A stretch of DNA of 64,000 nucleotides, taken from Pelomyxa schiedti. Taxonomy: Eukaryota; Protista; Evosea. Position 1 is the stretch's first letter. The number at the start of each line of letters is the position of its first letter. The stretch is from NCBI GenBank assembly GCA_020536535.1, contig JAHLWZ010000151.1:30965-94964 (forward strand), read 5' to 3'. This document shows, piece after piece, positions 4,175 to 64,000 of this stretch. Made by a program: the position numbers and the translations under genes. The notes beneath the pieces are model-generated. The model was given only the letters and a program-made list of their open reading frames with translations, was not told the DNA's origin and searched no databases.

Positions 4175-5511
4175 CTAGTGGTAGGAGCCACCACCTTCAT
4201 CATTATTTTCCTGGGAAGTACTTGTAGGATCCTTTGCCTTGATTTTTTCTGTTGAACAGTGAGATTGGGCTGATTTTTGAGACATACTAGGCCGTATGTC
4301 CGACAGCTGAGCTGTACCCAATGGCATGTTCTCGTTTGATGTCTCATGGGATACTATGGTGGCTTCTTCATTTACCAGAACACTACTGTTTTCAGTAGAA
4401 TATGCTCTCACTTGGACACTTGTGTCCAGGACTGAATTGTACTTCTCAGAGGCCATCTGGGGTGGTGCCCCAATAGTGTTATGTACAGAGGTATTGTATT
4501 CCCCCGTTTGTTGTGTGCTGTAATCAACAACCTGGGGATTGTCTGCCTGTGTTTGTTGCTGGCCGATATCAGCAAGGACATTAGGATTTTCAGGCTGTGT
4601 GCTGGTGGTGTATGTCTCAAAGTTGGTGGCCTGTTGTGTGATGTCATAAGTAGTTGGATGTGTACTCAATTCTACGGTCACATTCCTACTGCCTGCAAAA
4701 TTGATCAACGATTATAGTATCTTTAAGTAGGGGCAAGAAAATAGTACCACCAAGTTCATGTGTAGGACGAGTAGATGAATGAGATGAAGCCTTGAGGTTT
4801 TTAGTGCTTGATGGAACTGGAGCAGGGGATGATAATGTTTGGGATTCGTGGCCTCCGTTTACGATCTGGGAATGATGGTTTGCATGGAGAGGCATTCCTG
4901 GATCGGGAGCAGTGTTGTGTGGGCTGAGTACATGGCTGTTATGAGAATCAATCGTTGGCAGCGGTTCTATTTTGCTACGGCGAAGAGAGCCACTGCTACC
5001 AACACCTGTAGCAACATCTGCCTTGGGCTCTGGGCCCGTTTTTCTTCCAGAGTATAAATGAAATTGCACAGTAACAAGGTACTAACCTATTTGCGGGACT
5101 ATACCCCGGTCTCATTCTTCTGAGAAGCGATTCTTGTTCAATAGCGTCCCTCTGCCATTGCCAATATACGGTGTGTTTCGCCTTGACTGCCTCCAACCGT
5201 TGTGCAAAAGCCTGAAAAATATAAATAAACATACGGAAAAAAAAGATCTAAAACCACATTCCCAATGAAAGAAAAGACAAGACAAGAAAAGAAAAGAAAA
5301 GACAAAAAAAAAAAAAAAAAAAAAACCGTACGATGTTCTCTGCGTTGATTCTTTCTAGTTCCCTCTTCCTTGCCTCGCGATTGAGGCTCCTCACGCCCAC
5401 CACGGGCGCCGCGTAACGCGTCGGCGACGCCCGTATTTGCGCCATCTTGCTGTCGTGCACCCCGTCTACGTAATCGTTCCACTGTCTCTGTGCCACCTCC
5501 GCTTTCCTCAT
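4175..5511 (-). CDS. CFAP97/Hemingway-domain-like cilia-associated protein with low-complexity tail; multi-exon
   Basis: SLNREARKRELERINAENI|AFAQRLEAVK...WQRD resembles the CFAP97 (KIAA1430) motif. GT-AG introns join it to the S/T/Q-rich ORFs 4686-5069 and 4175-4708. Confidence 0.65.
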
Positions 5512-13989: not shown

Positions 13990-14089
13990 NNNNNNNNNNN
14001 NNNNNNNNNNNNNNNNNNNNNNNNNNNNNNNNNNNNNNNNNNNNNNNNNNNNNNNNNNNNNNNNNNNNNNNNNNNNNNNNNNNNNNNNN
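13990..14089. other. Scaffold gap (100 N)
   Basis: Run of N. Confidence 1.
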
Positions 14090-34359: not shown

Positions 34360-34614
34360 GGTCGCTACACGAGAGGTTGACGCCACAAATATCGTGTTGT
34401 GCAACAAACAGTACTGTCAGAATGAGATCTCTCCTACCACACCACCACCAACCAAGACCAACTTAACCAGAATTAATAAAAGACAAAATTAAAATTGAAA
34501 CACCGCACCGCTCTGTCTGCTCCCTTTTTTAGTAAATGCGTTGATAGTTAAAGATCTATTTGATGATCCTGTCTTTCAAGGCTATTTCCACAGCCCCTTT
34601 CAGACCACGAATCC

Positions 34615-34714
34615 NNNNNNNNNNNNNNNNNNNNNNNNNNNNNNNNNNNNNNNNNNNNNNNNNNNNNNNNNNNNNNNNNNNNNNNNNNNNNNNNNNNNNN
34701 NNNNNNNNNNNNNN
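34615..34714. other. Scaffold gap (100 N) flanked by an identical 121-bp overlap
   Basis: 34494-34614 is identical to 34715-34835. Confidence 0.95.
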
Positions 34715-48453: not shown

Positions 48454-49334
48454 GTATAGCCGATGAACTCAATTTACCGCCTCAGCATTACCTTAGGCCA
48501 ATGGCTCTTCCTACCGAAACCATCGAAAACAAGAGTGTGAAAAAACAAAGCGGCATTCATGTTTTGGGTAAAAACCAATACATGCAAGTGGATACTTCTT
48601 TTTTCCAATTTGACGGGCCAGATTCACCAGTACTATGTTTCTCCAACACGGTATTGTTGCATGCCAGCACTACCCAGTCTCAAGTCACCATTCTTCCCCA
48701 CACAGTCCAACTTCAATAAAACCCAACACACTGTGGCGAGGTACTTCGTGTCCCTGTGTTCTAAGTGCGGTTCTAATCACTGATGGATTTCCGGGAACTT
48801 CCGTGCATCTGTTAGTACCCTGAGAAGAGATTCAGGCGACACCTAGGAGTGATTCTGGTGCTTGAAGGCGGGAGCAACACCATTGTAGTTACTCACTAAT
48901 CTTGTGTTTGTGTTCGGGATTCTTTCTCCCTTACTACACAAGTAAAACAACAACCATCCACACCAGCACACCTCACAGTGTGGTCTCTATCCAAACCCAA
49001 TCTACCTCGGCACACACTAAAAGAACATTTGTCTCAAAACCAACTTTTTTTTCTCAGTCTTTCCTCAGGACAGTTGGTTTTAGATGTGGAGGAGGTAGAG
49101 GTTGTTGTGGGTTAATTGGTAGATTTGGAACGACGGTAAGTTCTATTGCTCAAGCAAACGGGCATATCACTAGCACTGATGGTGTGTGCTGTAGAGGCTT
49201 TCTCAAAACAGCAAAGCGCGTAAAGGAGGACCAGCAGGAAGGTGACTATGACCAACTCGGGTGCGAAAAAGCCAAACCAGTTATAGACCGTACGCGGAGT
49301 GATTTCGCGAGCACCCGGAGTATATGGCTGATGG

Positions 49335-50947
49335 TCACCCGTACCAGACAGCCATGTGGAGGTTGGCACCGTAAAGGTAGACCATTTTGGGAATTGGCAG
49401 TTCCCAGCGGGAACCTGTGACGGGCTTGCCACCTGGCATTACAAATATGAGTATTGGTTGGAAGTGGAGGATGGGCTGTTGCCCAACCAATAATAGCAGA
49501 CACGGCTGGGGCAATGCCATTAAGTACAGGAGGGGTCACTGAGTGGCCAGGTACCAGTGGGCCACTGGCGTAGCCTAAACACCAGAGTTAGATCATGGAA
49601 TCCTGAGTGAAGATATTGTCGGAATAAAGTGGGGTGTGCAGTACACAGTCCAAATGGCATTAATTGACTTTGTCCACAGTTTCACTTGACCAATGGCTGC
49701 CAGCCCCACTTCTGCGTCATACAACGCAAAGTGAGAAACAGCAAAAACTTTCAAATCTGGCCGCGGGCCATTGGACCAAATTTCGTCCATAATTGCCAGT
49801 ACAAGGCTGGAACAGGAATAAGCCAAGATTCAGAAAAGGCATTAAAGCTTACGCAGGGCTAGAAAAAGTGTAAATAGGAAAGATGAGTATGATTGTGTCA
49901 ACGGATTTAGTTGCCGCTGCAACTGCAGCAGGATTGTGCCCAGTTGCAAGCTCCACATGAACATCAGAACAGTTTTTATGTAAAAACTGCTCCACCTGTC
50001 GTGACACTTCTAAAGTGAACCCTTTCATATTTCTGCTGGCTGGTATAATCAAAACCCTGGTGCAACTTAATTATCGTCGAACAGGGGAGTATACCTCTGA
50101 GAGTGCTCTGAAGGAGATGGAACATAGGTATCAGCTAACTCCCTTGAAAGAGTCACTACAGGAGCATCTGCCGCTCTCCGTTTGCGTGTATCGCGCGCTT
50201 GTACTATTTCTCTCTCAATCTGAGCCGAACTCCAGGTTGTAGAGATAAAAACTGGAACACAACCCAGTGGAAAATGATTCCCATGGAATTTCAGAGCACA
50301 CTCAAACACTTTCTTTTCTTCTTCACTGTATTTTTTTGTGAGAATTGAATGAACATAGCGAAAATGAAAGGCTTACATAACACCTGGGGGAGCAAAAACA
50401 ATTGGGAGTAATGCTTTTTTCTTGTAAGAACGCAGTGGGTGGCAAGTTAGACCATTCTTGATGATAATAGACGGGTGAAGAACTACTAGTAATCTATCTA
50501 AGCACTACAGATTATTAACAATCTTGTGGTAAGAGGGTGTGAACAGGAGTATACAAGGCCTAACTTTCAAGAGTGAACATACCTTCTTAGTAGGTTCATT
50601 AAGAGAGCCATGGACCAAAGGTGAAAGTAGAACAAGAATATCTGACTGAGCTTCCTTCACATATACGTCTTGCATGCAGTCTCTAAATATCTATGTCAAA
50701 ACACGAAAAAATAACGAGACCAACTTTATGGCACAACGACCAGAGGTGTAGCGTGTCTGGCAAGAAGTGCACCTGTTGATCTTTGTGTGTTAGACACGCA
50801 AGGCAAAAATCATGTAACTGAACCCACAGATGCTTTGGTGCATCCTATGATGTTGTAGCAGTGTGTAGGGATGAAGGGGCGCAGTGTACCCTGCAGTACT
50901 ACGAACCGATAGTACGAAAGGGATTCTCTTAATTCTCGTTTTTTCAT
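49335..50947 (-). CDS. Tandem flavodoxin-fold protein (iron-sulfur flavoprotein/FMN-reductase-like domain fused to a second flavodoxin-like domain); many short introns, both ends uncertain
   Basis: Manual splicing gives INRCTSCQTRYTSGRCAIKDCMQDVYVKEAQSDILVLLSPLVHGSLNEPTKKCLDRLL...HPLRSYKK, then RVLIIPASRNMKGFT...DTIILIFPIYTFSSP...PIPKMVYLYGAN. Confidence 0.7.
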
Positions 50948-51400
50948 AGAAAATGATGGTAAAAAACGAGCAAAACAAGATGTGGCTGTTTTTTAAAACA
51001 CCATAAAGGCCAGCATTCCGATCCGTTGATTATTGATTCAGCCATGTGGGCACATCTTGAATCGGGAGGCCAATATTGTGTGTGATAGGAGACCAGAGTC
51101 CGGTTGGGGTGACGTCAACTGTGATTGGTCACTGGGCGCGACCCCACAAGTGTCTGCAAGTAGAAACTACCGACTCTGCGAATCCAGCCTCCTCCGTTTA
51201 CCCACACCCTTGGTTTCAACGATAAACGAACCGTACAGGTGGGCAACAAACCATCGATGAGGCTATGTTAGGCACACTTTTTTTTAGAATTCCTAAAGGA
51301 GGTCTTCGAAGAACACTTGTTTCTTCACGTAGACGGCGGTTCTAGGAACTCAAATAGCACAAAAAAAAGTGAGAACAAGATTAAATAACAGGTCCCGACC

Positions 51401-54400
51401 ATGGCGCGCACAGGGCAGCAAAACACTGACAGGTGGTGCTCTTCTCCAACATAAATTTTGGAGCGCGGGGTGCAGCGATTTTTTTTATCATCAACTGTTT
51501 TCTTCTTAATTCTGGCGTAGGTTCCTTGTTGCGGTCACAGGCACAAGCTGCCGATTTCCGACTGCGATAAATATCGACGAGTACTACAACCTCTTGCACA
51601 GCTGCGCCGACGCCGTCGGAGTTGTTCCGGCTCACAAGCTGAACACCGCGGTACACTGCGTTTCAGGAAAGATCAAGACCCCCTGTGCCGGAGCATTGAA
51701 TGACCCCCTTACGCACTGCGATCCCGCTTTCTTTGGCTTGCTGTCTCGCGAGGCCTCGTTCCTGAGCCCGGTCCAGCACCAACTGATGCAGATCTCCTGC
51801 GAGGCACTGGCCGATGCCGGCGAGCCTTTCACCGTCGTACCGCCCGGCGCCAGCTCCGACAACGAGGGTCCCGGCAAGTACGTCGGCGTTTTCGTCGCAA
51901 GCTTCGGGATGGACTGGCCCGTGATCCTCATGACGACGGAGGCTGACATATCTCCATACACTGCGAACGGTGCAGCCCTGACCATGCTGAGCAACAGGCT
52001 GTCGTGGTTCTTCGACTTCAAGGGGCCCAGTGTCACCGTCGACACTGCCTGCAGCGGCTCGCTGGTTGCATTGCATTTCGCATATACGAGCTTAAGAGAC
52101 GGCGACTGCGACGCGGCCTTGGTCGCCGCTTCCAATTTGATCTTACTGCCCCAATTTTCTCTTTCTGTATCTCGAGCGGGGATGACTACGCCCTCTGGAA
52201 GGTGTCACACGTTTGGTTCCAATGCGGACGGCTATGTTCGTGCAGAAGGAACCTCTGCCTTGTTTTTGAAAGTATGTTTGAAAAATTGTACAAGCATTCA
52301 TTGATTTGTGTTTTCCTCCCTTTGAAAACAAAAATTTTCTAGCCTCTGGCTGATGCAGAGGCCAATGGTGATCATATCTACTGCGTGATATCTGGCACAG
52401 CCACCAATCACGACGGAAGCAAGCAGTTTATCAATCGGCCATCAACCAGTGGTCAGGTGCCCGTTGTGCAGCGAGCTCTGACAGTGGCACAAGTAGATCC
52501 AAAGGACGTGACATATGTTGAGGCTCATGGAACGGGAACTCCAGTGGGTGATCCAATCGAGGTGGAAACCCTGAGGAGAGTTTTCAGTGAGGAGGTGACT
52601 GGAACAAGAGGTCCTTGCTTTATTGGTTCCGTAAAAGCGAACATTGGGCACTCTGAGGCAGTTGCTGGGTTGGCGAGTCTCACCAAAGTCATTCTTATGT
52701 TACAGGTTTACACTTCCATGAGATTTACTTATTACTCACACTCGTTTAGCACGATGAAATTTTCCCCCAGATGACCGTGCCTATTAATACCCACATTCAC
52801 TTTGGAAGCCTATCTGTCTCCTGGAAAGGACAGCAGTGGAGTAAGATCACCAAAAAAAGGATTGCTGTTGCCAATTCATTTGGCTTTGGAGGCAGCAATG
52901 CGACCGTCGTCGTTGAGGAGTACCACACAACTCCACGCCCTGATTATGGCCTCGTAGAAAAACCGTTGTTTGTCCCCCCTGAAGAGAGCGTTGGTGGAAA
53001 ACCGTTCTATTTTTTGCCGCTGTCTGCCCACACCACGGCTGCGCTTACTGCATGTGCACAAAAGTGGGTTTCATTCCTATCGGAAAGTAAGTGCAACTTG
53101 TCAGAGATTATTTACAGTGCTGGAAAACGCACAAGTCATTTTTCCCAGCGCCTTGCACTTCTGGGGCGAACAGCACAAGATATTGCAAACGCCTTGGACA
53201 CCTTCATACAAAATCCCAAAGGACAACAGCAAGCAACACCCGAGTCATCGTGGAAGACTGGAACATCTCAACTTCTCACCACAAAGAACAAAATCTTATT
53301 TGTATTTTCAGGTCAGGGGCCTCAATGGTATGCAATGGGAAGGCAGATGTTCTCTGACGATCGTATATTCCACGACGCAATGACACAAGTCGATTCCATT
53401 GGGAGAAGAATCATGGGGTGGTCAGTGATCGAGGAACTTCACAAAGCTGAAAGTGACTCGCGTGTGAATCAGACACAGTTCGCACAAGTGTTGATTTTCG
53501 CTGTCCAAATTGGCCTGAATGCAGTGTGGCAGCACTGGGGAATTGTGCCCGAAGCTGTTGTTGGACACAGTGTTGGTGAAGTGGCTGCCGCCGTCGTGAG
53601 TGGCTACCTGACGCTCGAGGAAGGCGTTCTTGTCATCAGCGTGAGGTCTCGCCTGCAGCAGGCACTCAGTGGGAAAGGGAAAATGCTTGCCATCAACATG
53701 TCGTACACAGAGGCTTCTGAACTCATCTCCGACGTGGTTGGCGTTGATATTGCCTCGGTGAACAGCGCCGATTCCGTTGTTTTGGCTGGAGACCCTGCTG
53801 CTCTGACTTCTTTGGAGAAGACCCTCAAATCCAAGGGGAAGTTTGCAAAGTTTCTGTACGTTCAAAATGCGTTCCACAGTTACCAAACAGAACCGATCAA
53901 AGAGCAGTTGCTTCAGGAGCTGCAAGGACTCTCTCCTGCACCACATCCAAAAATCCCAATGATTTCAACGGTGTATGCCAAACCCCTTACTGAACCCCCA
54001 GGGCCAGACTACTGGTGGAAGAACGTGAGGTGCAGCGTTCTGTTTTACCCTTCTGTCCTGTATGCTCTTGAGGAGAAATTCAACGTTTTTGTGGAGTTGG
54101 CCAATCACCCAGTCCTCTCTGTGTACCTATCTGGCACTGCCACGTCCACACCAAAGAATCCCACTATCATCGTGCACTCGATTGAGCGAAACAAGCCCGA
54201 GAGAATGACGTTGCTGTCAAACCTTACCACGTTGTATGTGAACGGTATCACCAGCATGAACTGGTTCAACATCAGTAATTACCCCCTCGCTGCTCCTGCT
54301 GCAGAAGACAAGGCGAGGTGGGTCAAAATCCCCAATTTTCCAGTGTGGCAAAACACTGTTCCGTTGCACGAACCAAAGGCCTTCACAGCGTACAAGCAGG

Positions 54401-57400
54401 CATCTAATTTCACTCATAGCCTCCTGGGTTTGCGTGACGATAGCCCCGTACCTTCCTGGAGCAACGTTGTTGCACTCAATTTGTATCCTTGGCTCTCCGA
54501 TCACAGAGTGAGTGCTGGAGAGGACATTGTGGTACCAGGGGCGTTCTATTGCGAGCTGGCAACACTGGCTGCAAGGGAGATTTGGAGGACCAACCAGGTT
54601 CATGTGAAAAACTTGGGGTTCCACAGTCCCGTTGTATTGTCCCCTGACTCGTACGTGGATTTCAAGTGTGTGGTCACTGATTACCACCCGGGTGCCCAAC
54701 AAATGGGATTTGAGGTTCACACCAAAGCAGAGCAGGAGAAAACTTTTTCGAGGCGTTCTTCGTGCACAATCGAGCTTATAACTGAATCTACAGAAACTGC
54801 ACTGCCAGACGCAAAACAAGTTGATATTGACGCACTCAAGGCAACGTGCAAACTAATGAAAGGGCATTCAACAGTATACAAAGCTTTCTCTGACATGGGG
54901 TTAAACTACAAATCACTGTTCGCTCCAATTACCAAGATGTTTGTTGACAATTCTAACTACAACGAAGCACTGGGGCTGATGAAATTCAACAGCTCTGCAC
55001 TTGCCTCAGTTGCTCGAAACTCTGCAGTTCACCCAGCTGTTTTGGACGGTTGCTTCCAGTGCATTATTGGTGGGCTGTTAGGCCTACCGGACCTCCGAGG
55101 TTTAACTATACTCCTTCCTTCATCCCTTGGTGATATGCAAATACTCGCTCCACTCAGCACGGAGGGAACGAAAGATTTCCGTGTCAATATCAAAGAAAGC
55201 AGATTTACTCCAGAATACAGCGCAATCGAAGAGGAGCGGATGCGTTCAGCTCTTGAAGAAAACCAGCATTTAGTGCAGTTATGCAAGCATTATTCTGCGC
55301 TCTTTTGCCAGGCAGTCAGTGCAAACAGTGCAGACTGGAGTCCAAGCCATAGAAAATATCTCGATTGGCATAAAAAGCTTTCTGCTGATGTTGTTCCAAC
55401 GTCAGTGCCTCCTTCATATTCTTTCAAGGTGATGAACACTGAAGCGGAGCTGGCCCACAACGTGGGCAAGAAGTTGGTGGACCTTGTCAGCAATGCAGCT
55501 TCTCTTTTTGAAGATGAACACCTCCCCAAATTCTTCCTTGATTCTGTGTCATGTAATATCAACAAAGCCTCGGTTCCGGTTTTGGCACAGTTGTTGCAAT
55601 GTGGGAAGAGAATCAGGATTCTTGAAGTTGGTGGTGGCACTGGTGGTGCAACCAAACAACTTCTTCCTGTGTGTCAAGAAGCCTACAATCGCGGCTGCGA
55701 TATTGAATACATATTCACTGATGCCTCGCCATTCTTTGTCAACAAAGCGAAAGAGATGTTCTCTCACATACCCTTTGTCCAATGCAGCATACTTGATACC
55801 ACAAAACCCTTCCCTGAGGAGCTTCGAGATGTGGACGTAATGGTAGCTTTCGCTGTTGTGCACGTTGTTCCAGTCTTGGCGGACGCTCTCTCTCGAATGT
55901 TTGATGCTATGTCTCCTGGTGGTGTTCTTCTTCTCACAGAGCCAACCAAAAAAGACTATGTGTTCCTCAACTACCTGTTTGGCTTATTTGATCAGTGGTG
56001 GCAAAACGACCCAGCAGATAGAGCTCACGTGTGCATTGAGAGAGAAGAGTGGATTAAGCGTTTGAATAGTGCAGGTTTTTCAGATGTTGTGTCTGACACA
56101 GCTGGCTCCAAAGGGATAGAGCTCGCCTTTGCCTCGTTTATTGCACAAAAACCAATAACTGGAAGCCACACTTTTTCTTCATTTTGGTGCCATACAAAGA
56201 TAACCCATTTCGTTCCTCAGAAATCTATGATTGGTGAAGCTACTTTGATGGACATGTCTGGCAAGCCTCTAATTTCCGTCAAGAACCTGAACCTCAGTGC
56301 CATTTCCAATAAAGTAGCCAACGTATCTCTTGGGAAGGAAAAGTGGGTCGAGCTCCCTCTGGAAGTACCACCACAAGATTCTCCTGCTGAGGAGGCTCCT
56401 ATCAAAAAGGAAGGTGTGTTGATATTTCTTTCCTGCCGTAATGAATTCTGTGAGTCTCTCTTTGCCTCTTTGATATCTCGTTATGAGAATGTTCTGACTG
56501 TAGAGCGTGGATCAAAGACAACAGTGACCTCCGATAAAGACACCACTCTTTGTATTGATCCTTTGAACAAGGACCACTGGGCTCAGTTGGTCAAATCGAT
56601 TGGAAAACCTACGACTTGTGATGTAGTCAACACGTGGCCGGCATCATACTACACAACAAACGAACCAAGTGTGGACGAACTCAAACAAACTTCAGTTGAG
56701 AGTGCGATGTCCCTGGCGTACTTGTCAACAGCCCTGAGCCAAGCCGAATTGAACTGCAGACTGATCACTGTAACAAAGGGAGTCCATGATCCCAGGATGT
56801 CACGTTGTCACACACCAGCGGTTTCATTGTTTACATTGGGAGGTGTTGCTAGAGTTGCTTGTACAGAAACGTCACTTCGCTTGAAGGTGATTGACCTGGA
56901 TCCTTGTGATGAGACAAACAATTCTAAAACGCACGTTATTCAAGAGTTATTGCATGGGTGGAAAAATCCGGTTGAAACTGATGTTTGTATAAGCAACAAC
57001 AGACGATTTGTAGAGAGAGTGAACATTGGTGACTACAAGGAATCTCTTTCCCTTTTGGAATCTCCAGCTGAACCGGTTCAACCCGAGGATGAAGGGTGGG
57101 AAGTTCAATTTGAATCTGCAGGTTCTCTGCCTCACTTCGTGAGAATAAATGCTGGCCGTCCGCTAGCCCCAACCGAGGTCTGCACAGAGATGAACCACGT
57201 TGGTTTGAACTTAAAAGACTCGCTCATTTTCAAGGGACAGCTTGGTGTTGAAGAGGCCACAGGACAGTGGTACAAGTATGGAAAGCTTGGTTTGGAAGGA
57301 TCCGGTGTTGTCAAGCGTGTTGGAAGTGCCGTAACTCACGTGAAACCTGGGGATGAGGTCATTGTACTCACCCGTTTGGGAACTCTGTGTTCACACTTGA

Positions 57401-60400
57401 TTTGTAACTTCCATTCAGTGTTCCCCAAGCCAACAAAAGTCTCGGAGGAAGAAGCTTCCAGTTTGGGGGTTCCAGCCTATACAGCCGTTTACTCTCTTGT
57501 TCACTGTGCGAGGGCCTGCAAAGGGGAGTTTATTATGGTTCATTCTGCTTCAAGTGGAGTTGGTCTGGCTGTAATGCACCTTTCAAAATCCCTTGGATTG
57601 CAAGTGCTGGCCACAGCCTCTTCTGAACGTGAACTGCAGTACCTAAGAGAGGTCGTTGGATTGGAAAATGTAATTGCAGGGAAGGACCCAAAATTTTATC
57701 AGAAGGTCATGGAGCTAACTTCCGGCCGTGGTGTGGATATCGTTGTAAACACGTACAGCGGCACACTCGTTGAAAAGTCCCTTCAAATTCTTGCAAGAAA
57801 TGGGAGGTTTATTCAACTCGTTCCTGGGCAACAGCTTCCCAGAGGACTGCTCACTGAAAACCAGTCCATTCACACCATTGAGCTCTCAAGTATTCCTGAT
57901 GAAAAGCTATTTTATGAACTTGGACCCGACGTTATGAACACGATAGCCTCCTTGGCTGGCGTAGTACCCATCCAGTCTTACGACCTTGCACACATCCAGG
58001 AAGCGTTTGATCAGTTGTCCAACCCAGAGAAAAGAGGCCAAGTCTCCATATCTATTAAGACACCCATTGAAAGGCTGGATATTCTCCCAAGCCACACTGG
58101 TACCAGCTGGTTGTGCAATGCAAACGCGTCTTACTTCGTTTCTGGTGGCTTGAATGGGTTTGGATTTGCAGTTGCTAAATGGTTGTTTTACCATGGCGCA
58201 CGTAATGTTGCCCTTGCTTCCCGTGATGGGAGACCAAAGACAAGCTCTGATAAGCACTCGATTGAGTGGCTGAAGTGTCACGGGTGCAAAGTGCTCTGTC
58301 TATCAATGGACGTGTGCAGCTACGATTCCGTTGCATCAGCATTCAAGGTGCTTGAGGCTGAAATGCCCCCAGTGGAAGGAGTGTACCACTGTGCTGCTTT
58401 GTACGGGGATTGCTCCCTGTATAACCTCACCTCGGAGAAGTTTTCACGTGTTTGTTTTCCAAAACTGGTTGGTGCTTGGAATTTGCACAAAGTTACACTC
58501 TCACATCCAGTCAAGCACTTTGTGATGTTTTCCTCTGTCTCTTCTCTGCTTGGCCGAGACGGACAAGCATCTTACGTTGCTGGAAACTATTTTATGGACA
58601 GATTCGTGCAATACAGGCACCATCTTGGATTGCCTGCCATTGCCATTCAATGGGGCGCAATTGGAGACACTGGAGTTTTGGCCACGTCTCCCTTGCCAGC
58701 AATGTCTCTTGCCGCTGATGGCATAAACCAGGTTTCTGCAACAGATTCTCTCGATTGCCTATATGGCATTCTTTCAACTAAAGAGTCGGATTCACCAATT
58801 TCTTTGTTCTCCGTTGAGATGACTAGCTTCTATCCAAGCAACAGAGCTACCCTTTCACTTGCCAGGTTTTCTGAAAATAAATTCATTGATGAAAATGCTC
58901 ACAAGGCAGTTTCTGGAGATGTTTCTGTGTTTTCCCTCCTGAAATCACGTGTGGCCAAGAGTCTGGGCATTGAGGAACAGACCATTGGAGAAGACATGGT
59001 TTTGGCGTCACAAGGCATAGACAGCCTTGTGGCAACTAGTTTACGCACCTGGATAATGTCTGAGCTTGGTGTTAGCATTTCACCGCTTAAATTGCTGAGT
59101 GGTGTATCAATCGGGGAGTTGGCCTCAGAAATAAGTGCCATGAGAGGTGAGCCTCCAGCGTCGACAGCAGGCCCTGCTGCCACTCCTGCAGCTGCGACAC
59201 CAACTAAACCAGCCCCCAGTGTTACGCCGGCTGCAACTGTGGAAAAACCTGCTGTTGTTGAACATTCTGCAGTTGCTACCAAGGCGCAACCACCAAAAGT
59301 ATTGTCCGAACTACCCTCGCCAAAACCTGAGAGCGTCGCATCTCTCACTACTGCAGTGTCTTCATCAGTGACTCAACTTGTGGGTAGCACTACCCAACAG
59401 CAGAAATCCAAGCGCATTGCAGTATTTGGTGGCTTCAGTCCTGACCCAGACATCAGAACTTGGCTCATTGGCAAGTTGAGAACGTTGTGCAACCTGTTCC
59501 CCTTGATAGACAAGTGGCTCTATGGCGCATCCTCTTCACTATGCATGTTAGTTGCCATCAACCACGAGGCACTGGACAGACTCCACTCCCAGCACCCTGT
59601 GCTGGATAAGTTTTTCCAATCAGGAGGTTCAGTTGATTTGTATTCATGGTAACTATACTCCCAACCTTTTTTTGTGTATGAATTACCTCTCATCTCCTCT
59701 CAGGGTACAGAACGAATCAAGTTGCCCCAGCAATGATGTTCTTTCCACAATGTTTATTGCTTCTCTGTGTACTTTTTACAATATTGCATGCTTTATTGCT
59801 TCCGCACTGTCAACTGGCGATGACGAGGATGATCCTGACGGAAATAACCGATTTATGGCGTACCTGCGATCTTTTGATATCTTGCTTGGGTATTCCTCAG
59901 GGCTGACCTCATGCATGGCTTTGAGCAGAGCAGGTCCGTGTGGTTATGTTTTTTTACCCTTAACCTAACTGCCTTTTTCAGATTCTCTAAAGAAGTTGCA
60001 ATTTATTTCCGCCGCTCTTGCTTGTGCTCAGCTCTTATGCTTTGCTGAATTGATCAATGAGTACATCAAGCAGTGGGGAAAAGATGTCTTCACTAAACCA
60101 TGCCTTGCAACGGTGACAGACTCTCCAGTTGCCATTCAGAAGGCTCTTCAATCCATCAATGCCGAATGCCCAAATGCTCCACTTCATGTCTGCATAGGGA
60201 TGGGTCCTAATTTTGCAGAAATCACAGGTTAGTTGGGTTCTGTTGTGGGAATGAGTAGGGGGAAAAAAATAAGATTCATATTCTAATGCACACATAGGTC
60301 ACCCAACAAGCATAGAGAAACTTAAAGAATTACTGCCTGAGCAGACTTCAACGTTGCCTGTCGTGTTTCCACTTCACAATCCGTATTACATCCATAAGCC

Positions 60401-63400
60401 AGTTGAAAGATTGTTGCACGATCTCCAGGCTTGTGGCTTTGACAAAGTATTGGGGCAAGTGCCAAACAATCCTCCAGTTATCAGCACAACCAAGCTGATT
60501 GATCTCTCTCACGTGTGCCTCCACCTTATACCCTAACCCTAACCTCATATCTCTTTTAGGAAGATTCCCTACCGCTTCTTAAACGTAACTTAAGAGATGG
60601 TGTGGAACTTTCATTCAATTGGCCGGACTGTGTCAAGTAAGTATCCATACAATAAGCTCTCTTCATAACATGAAAACAGAGCAGCGATTTCGCTTAAGGG
60701 GGGATGCACCGAAGTGAAGCTATTTGATTTCGGGCCAGCCGGAGTGGGATCTTTAACAAACCTGATTTGCTCTGGGTTTTCACTTAAATCTTCTATTGTA
60801 AACTGCATGACCGGGTTTGTTGGTCCCAAACCGAAAACAACACCAGCAATTCCACAGGCACCCCAACAAAAGGGCCAAGTCAGAAAGGACACACTTACAC
60901 CAGAGCAACAGATTGTCTACGAGTGGTGGTGTGAGGTACTAGCTGCACCCCCAGAGACAGTGGACGAGGACTTTTTCGAAGCTGGGGGAGACTCAGTTGC
61001 AGCAATCAAGTTTATCGCATGTGCAAGCAAGGGGGGCTGGAAGTTGGAAATCAAGGACTTGTTCCAGTGCAGAACCCTTCGGACTATAACAGAGCTCCTG
61101 CCATCACGAAAGGCCAGTAAGAGCACATCTATTGTGCAACAGCCACACGCAATGCAGAGGCCACCCAAAGTTCCACTTTCATACACACAGATGAGGCTCT
61201 TCTTTATCGATCAACTTGACCCCAACTCTGTTCAGTACAGCACCTGGGGTGCTCTTGTGTTGAAGGGAGCAGCACCCTCCACATCACTTCTCCAACAAGC
61301 AACTCTTGCAGCAGTGCAGAGGCACGAGTCTCTCAGAACTCTGTTTGTGATGAGTGATGGTGACGACAACCCCCACCAGTTGATCCTTCCACCTGAAGAG
61401 GCTCAAGGAGGATTTGAATTCACCGAGTTTGTTTACGATGGCCTTCAAGATGATGAACAACACAAGAAAGAACAGTGGGTCTTGAAGGGTTGTATGAAGG
61501 AGGTCCACAGACCTTTCAACCTCCAAACTGGCCCTCTGTTGAGGTTCTCTGTTTTCCGAGTGTCCAAGGAAGAGACCGTTTTGTTCGTGAATGCTCACCA
61601 CATCATTGTTGATGGGTGGTCTTTTGTTACTTTCGCCAAGGAAATTTCATACAACTACAACAGAGAGTTGGCACTTTCAAAACTCACCACGGAGACTGCA
61701 AAAACAACAATCCAACCCGCCTTGCTTCCACCCCCTCTACCAGCACTGCCCTTCCAGTACGCTGACTTTTCCCTGTGGCAAAGAGAACTGCTGCAGTCAA
61801 CCGAGCTCAAAGATGAGCAGCTGTCGTACTGGAAGAAAGAGTTGGAATGTGCACCAGAAGTATGTGAGCTTCCACTTGACCGACCCAGAGGAACACATCG
61901 CACCTATGCAGCAGGCACCCACACACACATTATTGCACCTGCTCTCTTTGAAGAACTTTGCTCGGTTGGACACACTTGCTGTGATGCCACACCATTCATG
62001 ACAGTTCTGTCCATGTTTCTTCTTTTGCTTCATCTCCACACCCCACGCCACCAAGCACCTTCAGCAGCGGAAGAAGTGGTAGGGTGTGACGTCGTTGTGG
62101 GGATTCCAACAGCAAACCGGCACTACCCCGGAGTGGAGTCTCTCATCGGTTTCTTTGCCAACACCCTTGCCATCAGGCTCAGGATAACCGAGGACAAAGA
62201 CCTCGAGTCTGTGCTTAAACAAGTCAAAGAAAAGGTTTTGGCAGCCCAAGGAGCTCAAGACATCCCCTTCGACTGGGTTGTTGAGGCAATTGGAGTTGGC
62301 CGCAAACTCAACACACAGCCACTTGTGCAAGTGATGTTCATCATGGACGACTGGGACGTAGGCAATCCAAACAATTTCTCTTTGGAAGGAATCCAGGCTG
62401 CAAATCAGTTGAGTGGACTGCAAGCGCCAGTCACCAAGTTCGACTTGACGTTGCACTGTTACGTTGCAAACAAGGAGCTTCACATGGAGTTCGAGTACGC
62501 CAAAGATATCTTGGACGACTCCACCATCCAAAGGATGGGTGCCAACCTGGAAGCATTGATGAAATCAGTGGCCAAGGCCCCATCTCAAGGCATCACAAAG
62601 ATGCTCCCCATCTCAGTTGGTGAGATTCAGCAGCTGGAGCAGTGGAACGCGACCGAGAAGGACATCAGAAGAGGGGGAGTGGCAGTTCACCACCTGTTTG
62701 AAGAAAAGGTTGCAGAGAGACCGAAGGCGACAGCACTCAAGTTCATGGACTCCACGGTGACGTACGAGCAGCTGAACAGCAGGGCGAACCAACTGGCACA
62801 CCACCTCATCGCAACGGGAAAGGTCGGGCCCGGCATCTTCGTGCCGATTGTCGCGGAGAGGTCGATCGAGATGTACGTTGCGGTATACGCAGTTCTCAAG
62901 GCGGGCTCTGCATACATCCCCCTCGACCCTGAATCACCGAGCGACCGCCTGTCGAGCGTCTTTGCCGACTCGCAGCCCCCGTTCGTCCTCCTGTCGAAGA
63001 AATCTCTCTCCAAGTGCCTCCCAAGCGGGTCTCCGCCCACCATCTCGGTTCTCGAAGATTCCAACCTTTGGGAGAGCCAGCCCACGTGCAACCCACCACA
63101 CGCGATCAAGACGGGGCAAGAACCGATTTACGCGATCCTCACTTCTGGCTCGACTGGAAAGCCGAAGTTGGCTGTGAACAACCACATTGGAGCAGTGAAC
63201 CACGGACTGTGGCTCACACAAAAGTTCGGAGTCACATCGGATTCCCGATTCCTCGTCAAGGCACCATTTTACTTCGATGCCTCGGTGGCCGACATTTTCT
63301 TCGTGCTCATTGCCGGTGCATGTGGAGTCCTGTGCCCTCTCGGCTCCGAGATGGATCCTGAGGCTCTCTTGAATATCGTTTCCTCGGAGAAGATCACTTG

Positions 63401-64000
63401 GATCTTCTTTGTTCCGGCGGTTCTGAAAGAGTTCATCAGCGTTGCTCGCTCGAATCCCAACACCAGACAGATGACAACCTCCTTGAAGCTCGTTTATTCG
63501 GGAGGAGACGCTCTCCAGTGGGAAGAAGTGGTCAGATTCGTTGACACGTTTGGTCCGCAGGTCCAGCTGTTCAACGTGTATGGTCCGTCTGAGGCCTCCT
63601 GCGGAACAACCTCGTTCGATTGCACCGAGGCGCTTCCCAGCAGGAACACGCTTTACTCATCCAGCCCTGTTGTTCCACTCGGAAGACCGATCGACAACGT
63701 GACCGTTTTCGTGCTCGACAGGAACCTGAAGCCGGTTCCAGTTGGTGTTGTTGGTGAGATTTACATCGGAGGAATCTCGGTGGGGATGGGATACATGAAC
63801 AGAGACGATCTCAACGCGAAGCACTTTGTCTCTTCCCCCCCAACGCTCTGCGGCGGAAAGCTTTACAGAACTGGTGACCTCGGCAGGTTCCTGCAGAACG
63901 GCGAGATTTCCTTTGTTGGAAGGGCCGACTTCCAAGTCAAGCTCCGCGGCCTGAGGGTCGAGCTCGGTGAGATTGAAGAGTGTTTCCGATCGAACCCCTT
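51401..64000 (+). CDS. Hybrid type I PKS-NRPS megasynthase (KS-AT-DH/MT-ER-KR-ACP-AT-PCP-C-A...), 3' end beyond the window
   Basis: ATG at 51401. Eight GT-AG introns (51433-51520, 52272-52342, 52706-52749, 59649-59703, 59934-59981, 60228-60297, 60513-60559, 60637-60679) restore one frame. KS DTACS/HGTGT/NIGHSE; AT GHSVG/AFHS; DH DHRV..P/HPAVLD; MT LEVGGGTG; KR SYVAGN; ACP GIDSL; PCP GGDSV; C HHIIVDG; A TSGSTGKPK/YGPSE/YRTGDL/GRADFQVK. Confidence 0.95.
59410..60770 (+). other. Internal acyltransferase domain resembling the fungal FAS beta-subunit acetyltransferase (starter AT)
   Basis: AVFGG, DLYSWVQNESSCPSNDVLS, GYSSG (GxSxG), ITGHPTSI, LPVVFPLHN, NWP and LFDFGPAG occur in the same order as the FAS1 AT motifs (FGGQG, GHSQG, VSGPP, FLPVxxPFHS, LDFGPGG). 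Confidence 0.75.
60680..64000 (+). other. Final visible exon encoding NRPS module PCP-C-A (not in the ORF track; no stop before the window end)
   Basis: In-frame DFFEAGGDS (60969), PLSYTQMRLFF, RHESLRT, HHIIVDGWS (61596), QYADFSLWQR, LIGFFANTL, TYEQLNSRANQLA, TSGSTG (63141). Confidence 0.93.

Follow-up and report, generated by a model that had tools for sequence, protein, structure and literature searches.

How a polyketide chain may be handed to a peptide-forming assembly line encoded in the same gene, and how the product would then leave, is the question raised by the end of scaffold C151 (contig JAHLWZ010000151.1) of Pelomyxa schiedti, an anaerobic (oxygen-avoiding) amoeba. The window analyzed here is the last 64 kb of this scaffold, in a genome of 52.4 Mb and 5337 scaffolds, and its final part carries a gene that joins a polyketide synthase (PKS) to a nonribosomal peptide synthetase (NRPS). 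Its architecture is unusual in two separately tested ways: the placement of a methyltransferase (MT) relative to the dehydratase (DH), and the presence of a second acyltransferase (AT) and an extra carrier between the acyl carrier protein (ACP) and the first condensation (C) domain. The best overall explanation, and in our judgment a probable one, is a fusion in which a starter-type acyltransferase (SAT) hands the polyketide to the NRPS, an acyl-homopeptide is made, and release occurs in trans. The genome was obtained from single cells and assembled with SPAdes (k up to 121) and RNA scaffolding (PMC8887013), and polyketides are unmentioned in the genome and symbiont papers (PMC8887013, PMC10579272). 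Literature coverage that leaves out most subscription journals yielded nothing on a PKS-SAT-NRPS layout, an MT embedded in a DH, or PKSs and NRPSs of Pelomyxa or Archamoebae, so that the view of the original prediction, that the domain order is non-canonical and uncharacterized, stands.

A spliced nuclear gene of the amoeba

The hybrid is a real nuclear gene of P. schiedti, present in RNA libraries and apparently intact. The original prediction of one spliced frame of roughly 4000 residues was borne out: nine exons, joined and translated, give a stop-free frame of 4044 amino acids with GT-AG introns of 43-88 nt, and the NCBI gene model P0001 (4010 aa, ending with the contig) follows the same frame. 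The long exon is a 100% match to KAH3766393.1, annotated merely as 'type I polyketide synthase [Pelomyxa schiedti]'. For intron 3, an acceptor at 52770 was dropped in favor of 52749 after comparison with the NCBI model and a paralog.

An apparent stop at 59650-59652 had left open that transcripts end there, but it lies in a 55-nt intron that is skipped in RNA-library sequence, and the PKS and NRPS therefore share one frame. Four of the five introns at the PKS-NRPS junction are present as joints in RNA-library contigs (55, 48, 47 and 43 nt; all GT..AG), the joint over the stop in one contig with 28 letters on its shorter side, while intron 60228-60297 and the three 5' introns are predicted. Further RNA-library contigs bridge SAT, the first carrier (T0) and the first C domain (C1), and a single DNA contig runs unbroken over 57200-62670. 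A paralog on contig C753 (74-78% identity) holds the whole domain order in a single contig, with two modules, and six of the eight intron sites recur in it at the identical place with GT-AG. Flanking segments match Rpc34, SPC12, PRA1, F-box, SRAP and a Cdc6/ORC-like AAA ATPase, which are eukaryotic housekeeping families, and because the introns are spliced, prokaryotic symbionts are ruled out as the source; the earlier view that contamination was unlikely can thus be made firmer.

Two departures from known domain orders

Pfam places the hybrid's domains in the order KS (ketosynthase), AT, DH, MT, ER (enoylreductase), KR (ketoreductase), ACP, T (carrier), C and A (adenylation), in agreement with the order first proposed (KS-AT-DH[MT]-psiKR-ER-KR-ACP-AT-PCP-C-A), in which psiKR is assigned by position only. 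Following the gene through contig C2062, C151:1-1895 and the paralog, the complete order becomes KS-AT-DH[MT]-psiKR-ER-KR-ACP-SAT-T0-C1-A-(T-C2-A)n-T. A motif check confirmed that catalytic motifs are present throughout (KS, AT, DH, MT, KR, ACP, T0, C1 and A), the sole exception being ER, whose motif reads HSASSGVG in the hybrid and HSASCGVG in the C753 paralog where the oxoamine synthase-type (AOS-type) sister PKSs described below and 100 of 103 motif matches have GG. The ER domain is 77% conserved between both hybrids and as well kept as in the AOS-type sisters, and no trans-acting ER was seen in the flanking segments examined. The extender AT motifs GHSVG and NAFHS are of the malonyl type, and the PKS, a single module with no loading domain, is probably iterative.

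The first departure, shown by computation, is that the MT sits within the DH fold. A DH profile built from 169 complete DH domains matched, in all four Pelomyxa PKSs of the hybrid's family, with positions 6-228/243 before the MT and positions 230-276 after it; the C-terminal part alone scored up to 26.6 bits among Pelomyxa PKSs and 6.7 in the hybrid, against at most 2.5 in shuffles. An AlphaFold model of DH[MT] has a pLDDT of 87.6 (92-94 in the final strands, for which the underlying alignment gave no outside support). Solved DH domains align 273-275 of their ~280 residues to model positions 1-634 (Z 33, rmsd 2.1-2.5) and solved C-methyltransferases (CMTs) to positions 253-586. In this comparison the DHs of LovB and Dictyostelium Pks16 are contiguous. 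Canonical cis-AT PKSs with a CMT carry it after a complete DH, and no split DH was seen among the other MT-bearing PKSs retrieved. As weak evidence, DH[MT] as a whole found no matching model in the Atlas (best TM 0.50).

The second departure concerns the second AT that had been proposed. It is present, and its sequence relationships mark it as a starter-type (SAT/fungal FAS-AT) domain, brought in together with the NRPS half. Its own Pfam SAT match is weak (E 7.8e-4, below cut-off), but only four relatives exist among 1.8 billion representatives, all of them Pelomyxa proteins; three of these exceed the Pfam SAT cut-off, and two are SAT-T-C-A NRPSs without a PKS (NCBI models). A profile made from these relatives recovered from PDB the AT of fungal FAS beta (E 0.017), PksC and the norsolorinic acid synthase SAT (E 0.22), and in the Atlas the relative P0122 leads to FAS-AT/SAT clusters at 0.95-0.97. 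Nucleophile and histidine motifs are present (GYSSG and LHNPY; GYSAG or GYCGG in the relatives). At least 13 contigs of the genome carry the domain, mostly directly ahead of a C domain. A search of JGI metagenomes, which detects close relatives only, returned none. The fungal non-reducing PKS SAT (PksA/NSAS) and the FAS beta acetyltransferase share AT subfamily and motifs with the Pelomyxa domain, but they are N-terminal and feed a KS, whereas the Pelomyxa SAT is internal and precedes a T-C pair.

Beyond the contig end, C2062 overlaps by 121 nt with both the end and the start of the A repeat and encodes the A end, a T and a second C, and C151:1361-1895 encodes the A end, a T and a stop. The path stays in frame whatever the number n of T-C2-A units (5337 aa at n=1, 6452 at n=2). 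In one run, unique DNA had a contig depth of 27, the T-C2 unit 68 and the A repeat 92; one RNA run gave 22.6 against 7-9. This hints that n=2-3 fits better than n=1, although such depth is not a copy number. Retrieval of the downstream sequence thus added further module(s) and a final T, and showed that a release domain is absent: the hybrid, like its paralog, ends in a bare T followed by a stop. Only 3 of 1433 nt distinguish the two A copies of C753, and those of C151 are collapsed (identical), yet the paralogs are 80% alike; this suggests homogenization within each gene by gene conversion or unequal crossing-over. Read against LgrA, the pocket code of every copy is DAAFYGVCGK, which is not known to match a code with an assigned substrate.

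A proposed path from acyl chain to product

In the proposed route the PKS would build a methyl-branched acyl chain from malonyl-CoA and S-adenosylmethionine, possibly with some double bonds left if the ER works poorly. The SAT would pick up the completed chain at the ACP, bind it to its own serine and pass it to T0, serving as hand-over and probably as a chain-length gate; with the domain type in hand, this direction and substrate seem likely. C1 and C2 would then add an amino acid two or more times, and, because the A domains are identical copies, the same one. In the original prediction of a reduced, C-methylated chain joined to an amino acid, 'reduced' is uncertain because both hybrids are without a conserved ER glycine, and the predicted product becomes an acyl-dipeptide or longer because at least two C-A-T modules carry identical A domains.

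Release is placed in trans because the protein ends in a bare T, and the best candidate acceptor is a stand-alone KS-AT-ACP protein, which would append a single unreduced extender and, by forming a lactam, could yield a pyrrolidinedione (tetramate-type) ring. One such gene lies head-to-head ~290 nt from the C753 hybrid and another 11.4 kb past the stop of the C151 hybrid; at 79%, their likeness to each other is similar to that between the hybrids. The stand-alone KS has an intact Cys-His-His (ACSTS), and ClbC and 8xjy/8xju (colibactin ClbI) rank high among its PDB matches and low for the main KS, while its best AT match in PDB is ZmaA. In the reutericyclin/mutanocyclin route MucD (C-A-PCP) is followed by MucE (KS-ACP-TE) (PMC10161427). 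These proteins and the NRPS-following PKS modules of ZmaA and colibactin, in which an N-acyl-amino acid passes to a separate KS for extension and lactam formation, are the model for the proposed last step; MucE has a TE, whereas the Pelomyxa protein has its own AT and no TE, and its link is predicted. By this analogy we hold the extension and lactam closure tentatively, at somewhat less than even chances.

Nearly as plausible is that the first steps are the same and an unlinked hydrolase, reductase or amine acceptor frees the acyl-peptide, the KS-AT-ACP being unrelated. Several thioesterase-like matches elsewhere in the genome, an NRPS on C424 that ends in an R domain and a flavodoxin-like gene head-to-head with the hybrid would suit this. 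The flavodoxin/FMN-reductase-like exon (window 49200-50950, minus strand; E 2e-4, a weak match) is also a possible redox partner. Against unlinked release, a KS-AT-ACP stands near both hybrids and, in the flanks read, near neither AOS-type PKS, and a relative with 38% identity is fused straight after A-T in C176.

A different proposal concerns role and not mechanism, namely that the product is a structural or storage amino-lipid (membrane, glycocalyx or symbiont interface) and not a defense or signal compound. In the sister PKSs the last domain is an oxoamine synthase, which would suit the making of sphingoid-like lipids, and no tailoring or transporter gene cluster was found in the segments flanking the hybrid; specialized metabolism, however, typically has families of this kind, large and duplicated, degenerate in part and with tails that vary, and we rate this role as rather unlikely.

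Also unlikely is that the SAT loads T0 from free acyl-CoA, as it presumably does in the stand-alone NRPSs, the fused PKS releasing its chain or running in parallel and the fusion serving co-expression instead of channeling. Fungal FAS-ATs and many SATs use acyl-CoA substrates, and stand-alone SAT-T-C-A NRPSs exist in this genome. The PKS, however, lacks a thioesterase or any other exit, in the sister PKSs an offloading enzyme follows the ACP, and transfer from HexA/B to PksA shows that SATs can accept chains from an ACP. That PKS and NRPS are separate genes, or that the hybrid is an assembly chimera or prokaryotic contaminant, is very improbable despite a single-cell assembly whose scaffold ends share a repeat and which has two N gaps, given the RNA joint, the unbroken DNA contig, the independent paralog and the spliced introns.

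Several points weigh against the preferred route of SAT hand-over and release to the KS-AT-ACP. The SAT assignment draws on weak sequence signals, and its fold model has a pLDDT of 38. The SAT of the hybrid may also use another donor, because the stand-alone NRPS SATs must (acyl-CoA or a free ACP). C1 is nearer to LCL-type than to starter (lipo-initiation) C domains: it scores 132-204 bits with the C domains of Txo1/2, 5u89 and TycC (Txo2 204) and ~40 bits with 7c1k and surfactin C. The KS-AT-ACP likewise ends in a bare carrier and is tied to the hybrids by position alone; no NRPS accompanies a third copy (C351) within the 20 kb read, and NRPS-following KSs were not separated from others in the comparison set. 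The RNA contigs are short, come from a single study and in no case cross the whole gene, and the acyl-homopeptide is a predicted product.

Relatives, known systems and meaning

The SAT, C1 and the PKS core all have relatives that occur separately in the genome (Table 1), so the hybrid is best read as a fusion of a single-module reducing PKS with a SAT-T0-C-A-T-C-A-T NRPS. On C171 and C291 the same PKS core, with catalytic domains that are each 62-87% identical, leads to an ACP and a PLP-dependent oxoamine synthase. In a quick C-domain tree with thin sampling, C1 of the hybrid is sister to C1 of the SAT-T-C-A NRPSs (98); the nine Pelomyxa C domains group together in a single clade (100), apart from that of the fungal hybrids. 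A degenerate PKS copy (C151:18038-20951) lies 1.3 kb from a stand-alone KS-AT-ACP.

Table 1. Features of the hybrid gene (window positions) and related genes elsewhere in the assembly
Feature	Location	Strand	Evidence or remarks
Hybrid PKS-SAT-NRPS gene, 5' 4044 codons, 9 exons	51401..64000	+	continues past contig end to C2062, then C151:1-1895
Exons 1-5	51401-51432, 51521-52271, 52343-52705, 52750-59648, 59704-59933	+	
Exons 6-9	59982-60227, 60298-60512, 60560-60636, 60680-64000	+	
55-nt GT-AG intron with apparent stop	59649..59703	+	joint in RNA-library contig
KS (exons 2-4)	51521..52923	+	Pfam; Cys-His-His intact; DTACS/EAHGTG/NIGH
Extender AT	53299..54249	+	Pfam; GHSVG and NAFHS
DH, N-terminal part	54406..55143	+	catalytic His and Asp; profile, model, structure alignment
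CMT, inserted within DH fold	55162..56163	+	LEVGGGTG SAM motif, His-Glu pair; CurJ/citrinin/DszA CMT Z 33-34
DH, final three beta-strands after MT	56179..56307	+	profile, four paralogs; pLDDT
psiKR (structural KR half)	56404..57093	+	inferred from position only; 67% to paralog
ER	57169..58041	+	Pfam; NADPH motif without first conserved Gly; activity uncertain
KR	58126..58665	+	Pfam; NADPH motif GGLNGFG, YVAGN Tyr/Asn intact
ACP, then Ala/Pro/Thr-rich linker	58939..59127	+	Pfam; GIDSL
SAT/fungal FAS-AT-like acyltransferase, exons 4-9	59420..60800	+	GYSSG, LHNPY, DFGP
T0 carrier, no own A domain	60915..61100	+	Pfam; GGDS
C1	61170..62636	+	Pfam; HHIIVDG; nearest bacterial LCL-type C domains
A, 1360-nt repeat collapsed in assembly	62641..64000	+	identical to C151:1-1360; TSGSTG; pocket code
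Stand-alone KS-AT-ACP genes	L006:3294-6749, L014:1747-5358, L025:3617-7008	+	intact KS; AT motifs CHSLG/TPSHS
PKS-oxoamine synthase fusions, DH[MT] core	L016/L017 (C171), L019/L020 (C291)		intact ER motif
SAT-T-C-A-T-C-A-T-R NRPS	L033 (C424:44676-53500)	-	no PKS in upstream DNA read
Degenerate 5' PKS copy, KS-AT only	L006:8038-10000 + L007:1-951 (C151:18038-20951)	-	stops in KS; ends before DH
A-T-KS-AT-ACP copies	L027/L028 (C176)		
C-A-KS-KR gene	L029 (C693)		AT match absent
Two-module PKS	L021/L022 (C508)		
Distant HR-PKS	L023 (C891)		DH unsplit
Multi-module NRPS	L011 (C1181)		
Two adjacent ACPS/PPTase-family matches	G000:C561:21307-25231		only ones found in genome

Fungal iterative PKS-NRPS hybrids (PsoA, TenS, LovB-like) run KS-AT-DH-MT-ER0-KR-ACP-C-A-T-R. 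Like the Pelomyxa gene they fuse one reducing PKS module with a CMT to an NRPS, with an ER that may be impaired; they differ in passing directly from ACP to C, where Pelomyxa has SAT and T0, and in having one C-A-T module with an R/DKC end, where Pelomyxa has two or more modules and a T-stop. The MT inside the DH and C domains off the fungal clade are Pelomyxa features, and the PsoA C domain scores 65 bits with C1 against 204 for Txo2. The hybrid does not belong to this class, from which it departs at the ACP-C junction, in its number of modules, in having no R domain and in the clade of its C domains.

Closest in logic are the emericellamide and pneumocandin systems, in which a highly reducing PKS (HR-PKS), an acyl-CoA ligase and an acyltransferase shuttle the polyketide to the first T of a T-C-A-T NRPS (PMC3672099). 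An A-less T before the first C and an ensuing amide link are common to both; those systems use separate proteins and a CoA intermediate, whereas Pelomyxa has one polypeptide, a SAT/FAS-family AT and no terminal C. The flanking segments, screened down to a length of 75-80 aa, include no acyl-CoA ligase or acyltransferase gene. By analogy, the hybrid may work like this route compressed into one chain. Dictyostelium Pks16 (9nju), also an amoebozoan single-module type I PKS, is the third-best PDB match for the hybrid KS-AT, although best-match scores do not establish descent; it is not known to have an NRPS part, and its DH, the one feature compared for the original statement that dictyostelid PKSs generally lack a C-A module, is contiguous. 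The best single KS identities outside Pelomyxa are ~40%.

Some observations concern the scaffold itself. The same 1360-nt repeat stands at the start and end of C151, and C2062 closes the loop. Two 100-N gaps are present (window 13990-14089 and 34615-34714), the first without overlap; a 121-nt repeat at 34494/34715 was rejected as an inverted repeat and is a direct overlap around the gap. C151 is either misjoined at one of the two gaps, or tandemly duplicated, or a ~97 kb circle. Single-base differences at window 60854 and 60920 in one RNA run are possibly allelic, and GC3 is 0.69 in the first KS exon (51521-52271) and the A repeat (62641-64000) against 0.47 in the long PKS exon. Beyond the downstream side of the Rpc34-like gene, two 108-nt stretches (L005:4263-4370 and 4717-4824) form a perfect inverted repeat that may be an amplification artifact.

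More speculatively, and with less than even confidence, Pelomyxa may possess a mix-and-match system: one DH[MT] PKS chassis with swappable exits (oxoamine synthase or SAT-T-C-A NRPS), an in-cis FAS-type transacylase from ACP to PCP, a module number that shifts by recombination of identical A repeats, and a KS-AT-ACP that finishes a lipopeptide or tetramate, possibly directed towards symbionts or prey. An internal transacylase could link a PKS with an NRPS and spare the need to match ACP and C, and a DH that tolerates a 330-residue insertion between strands would be a natural insertion site; both bear on megasynthase design. The sister genes, which keep one core but differ in their tails, offer a direct test of how offloading domains set chain length, in an anaerobic amoeba with an unstudied repertoire of secondary metabolism.

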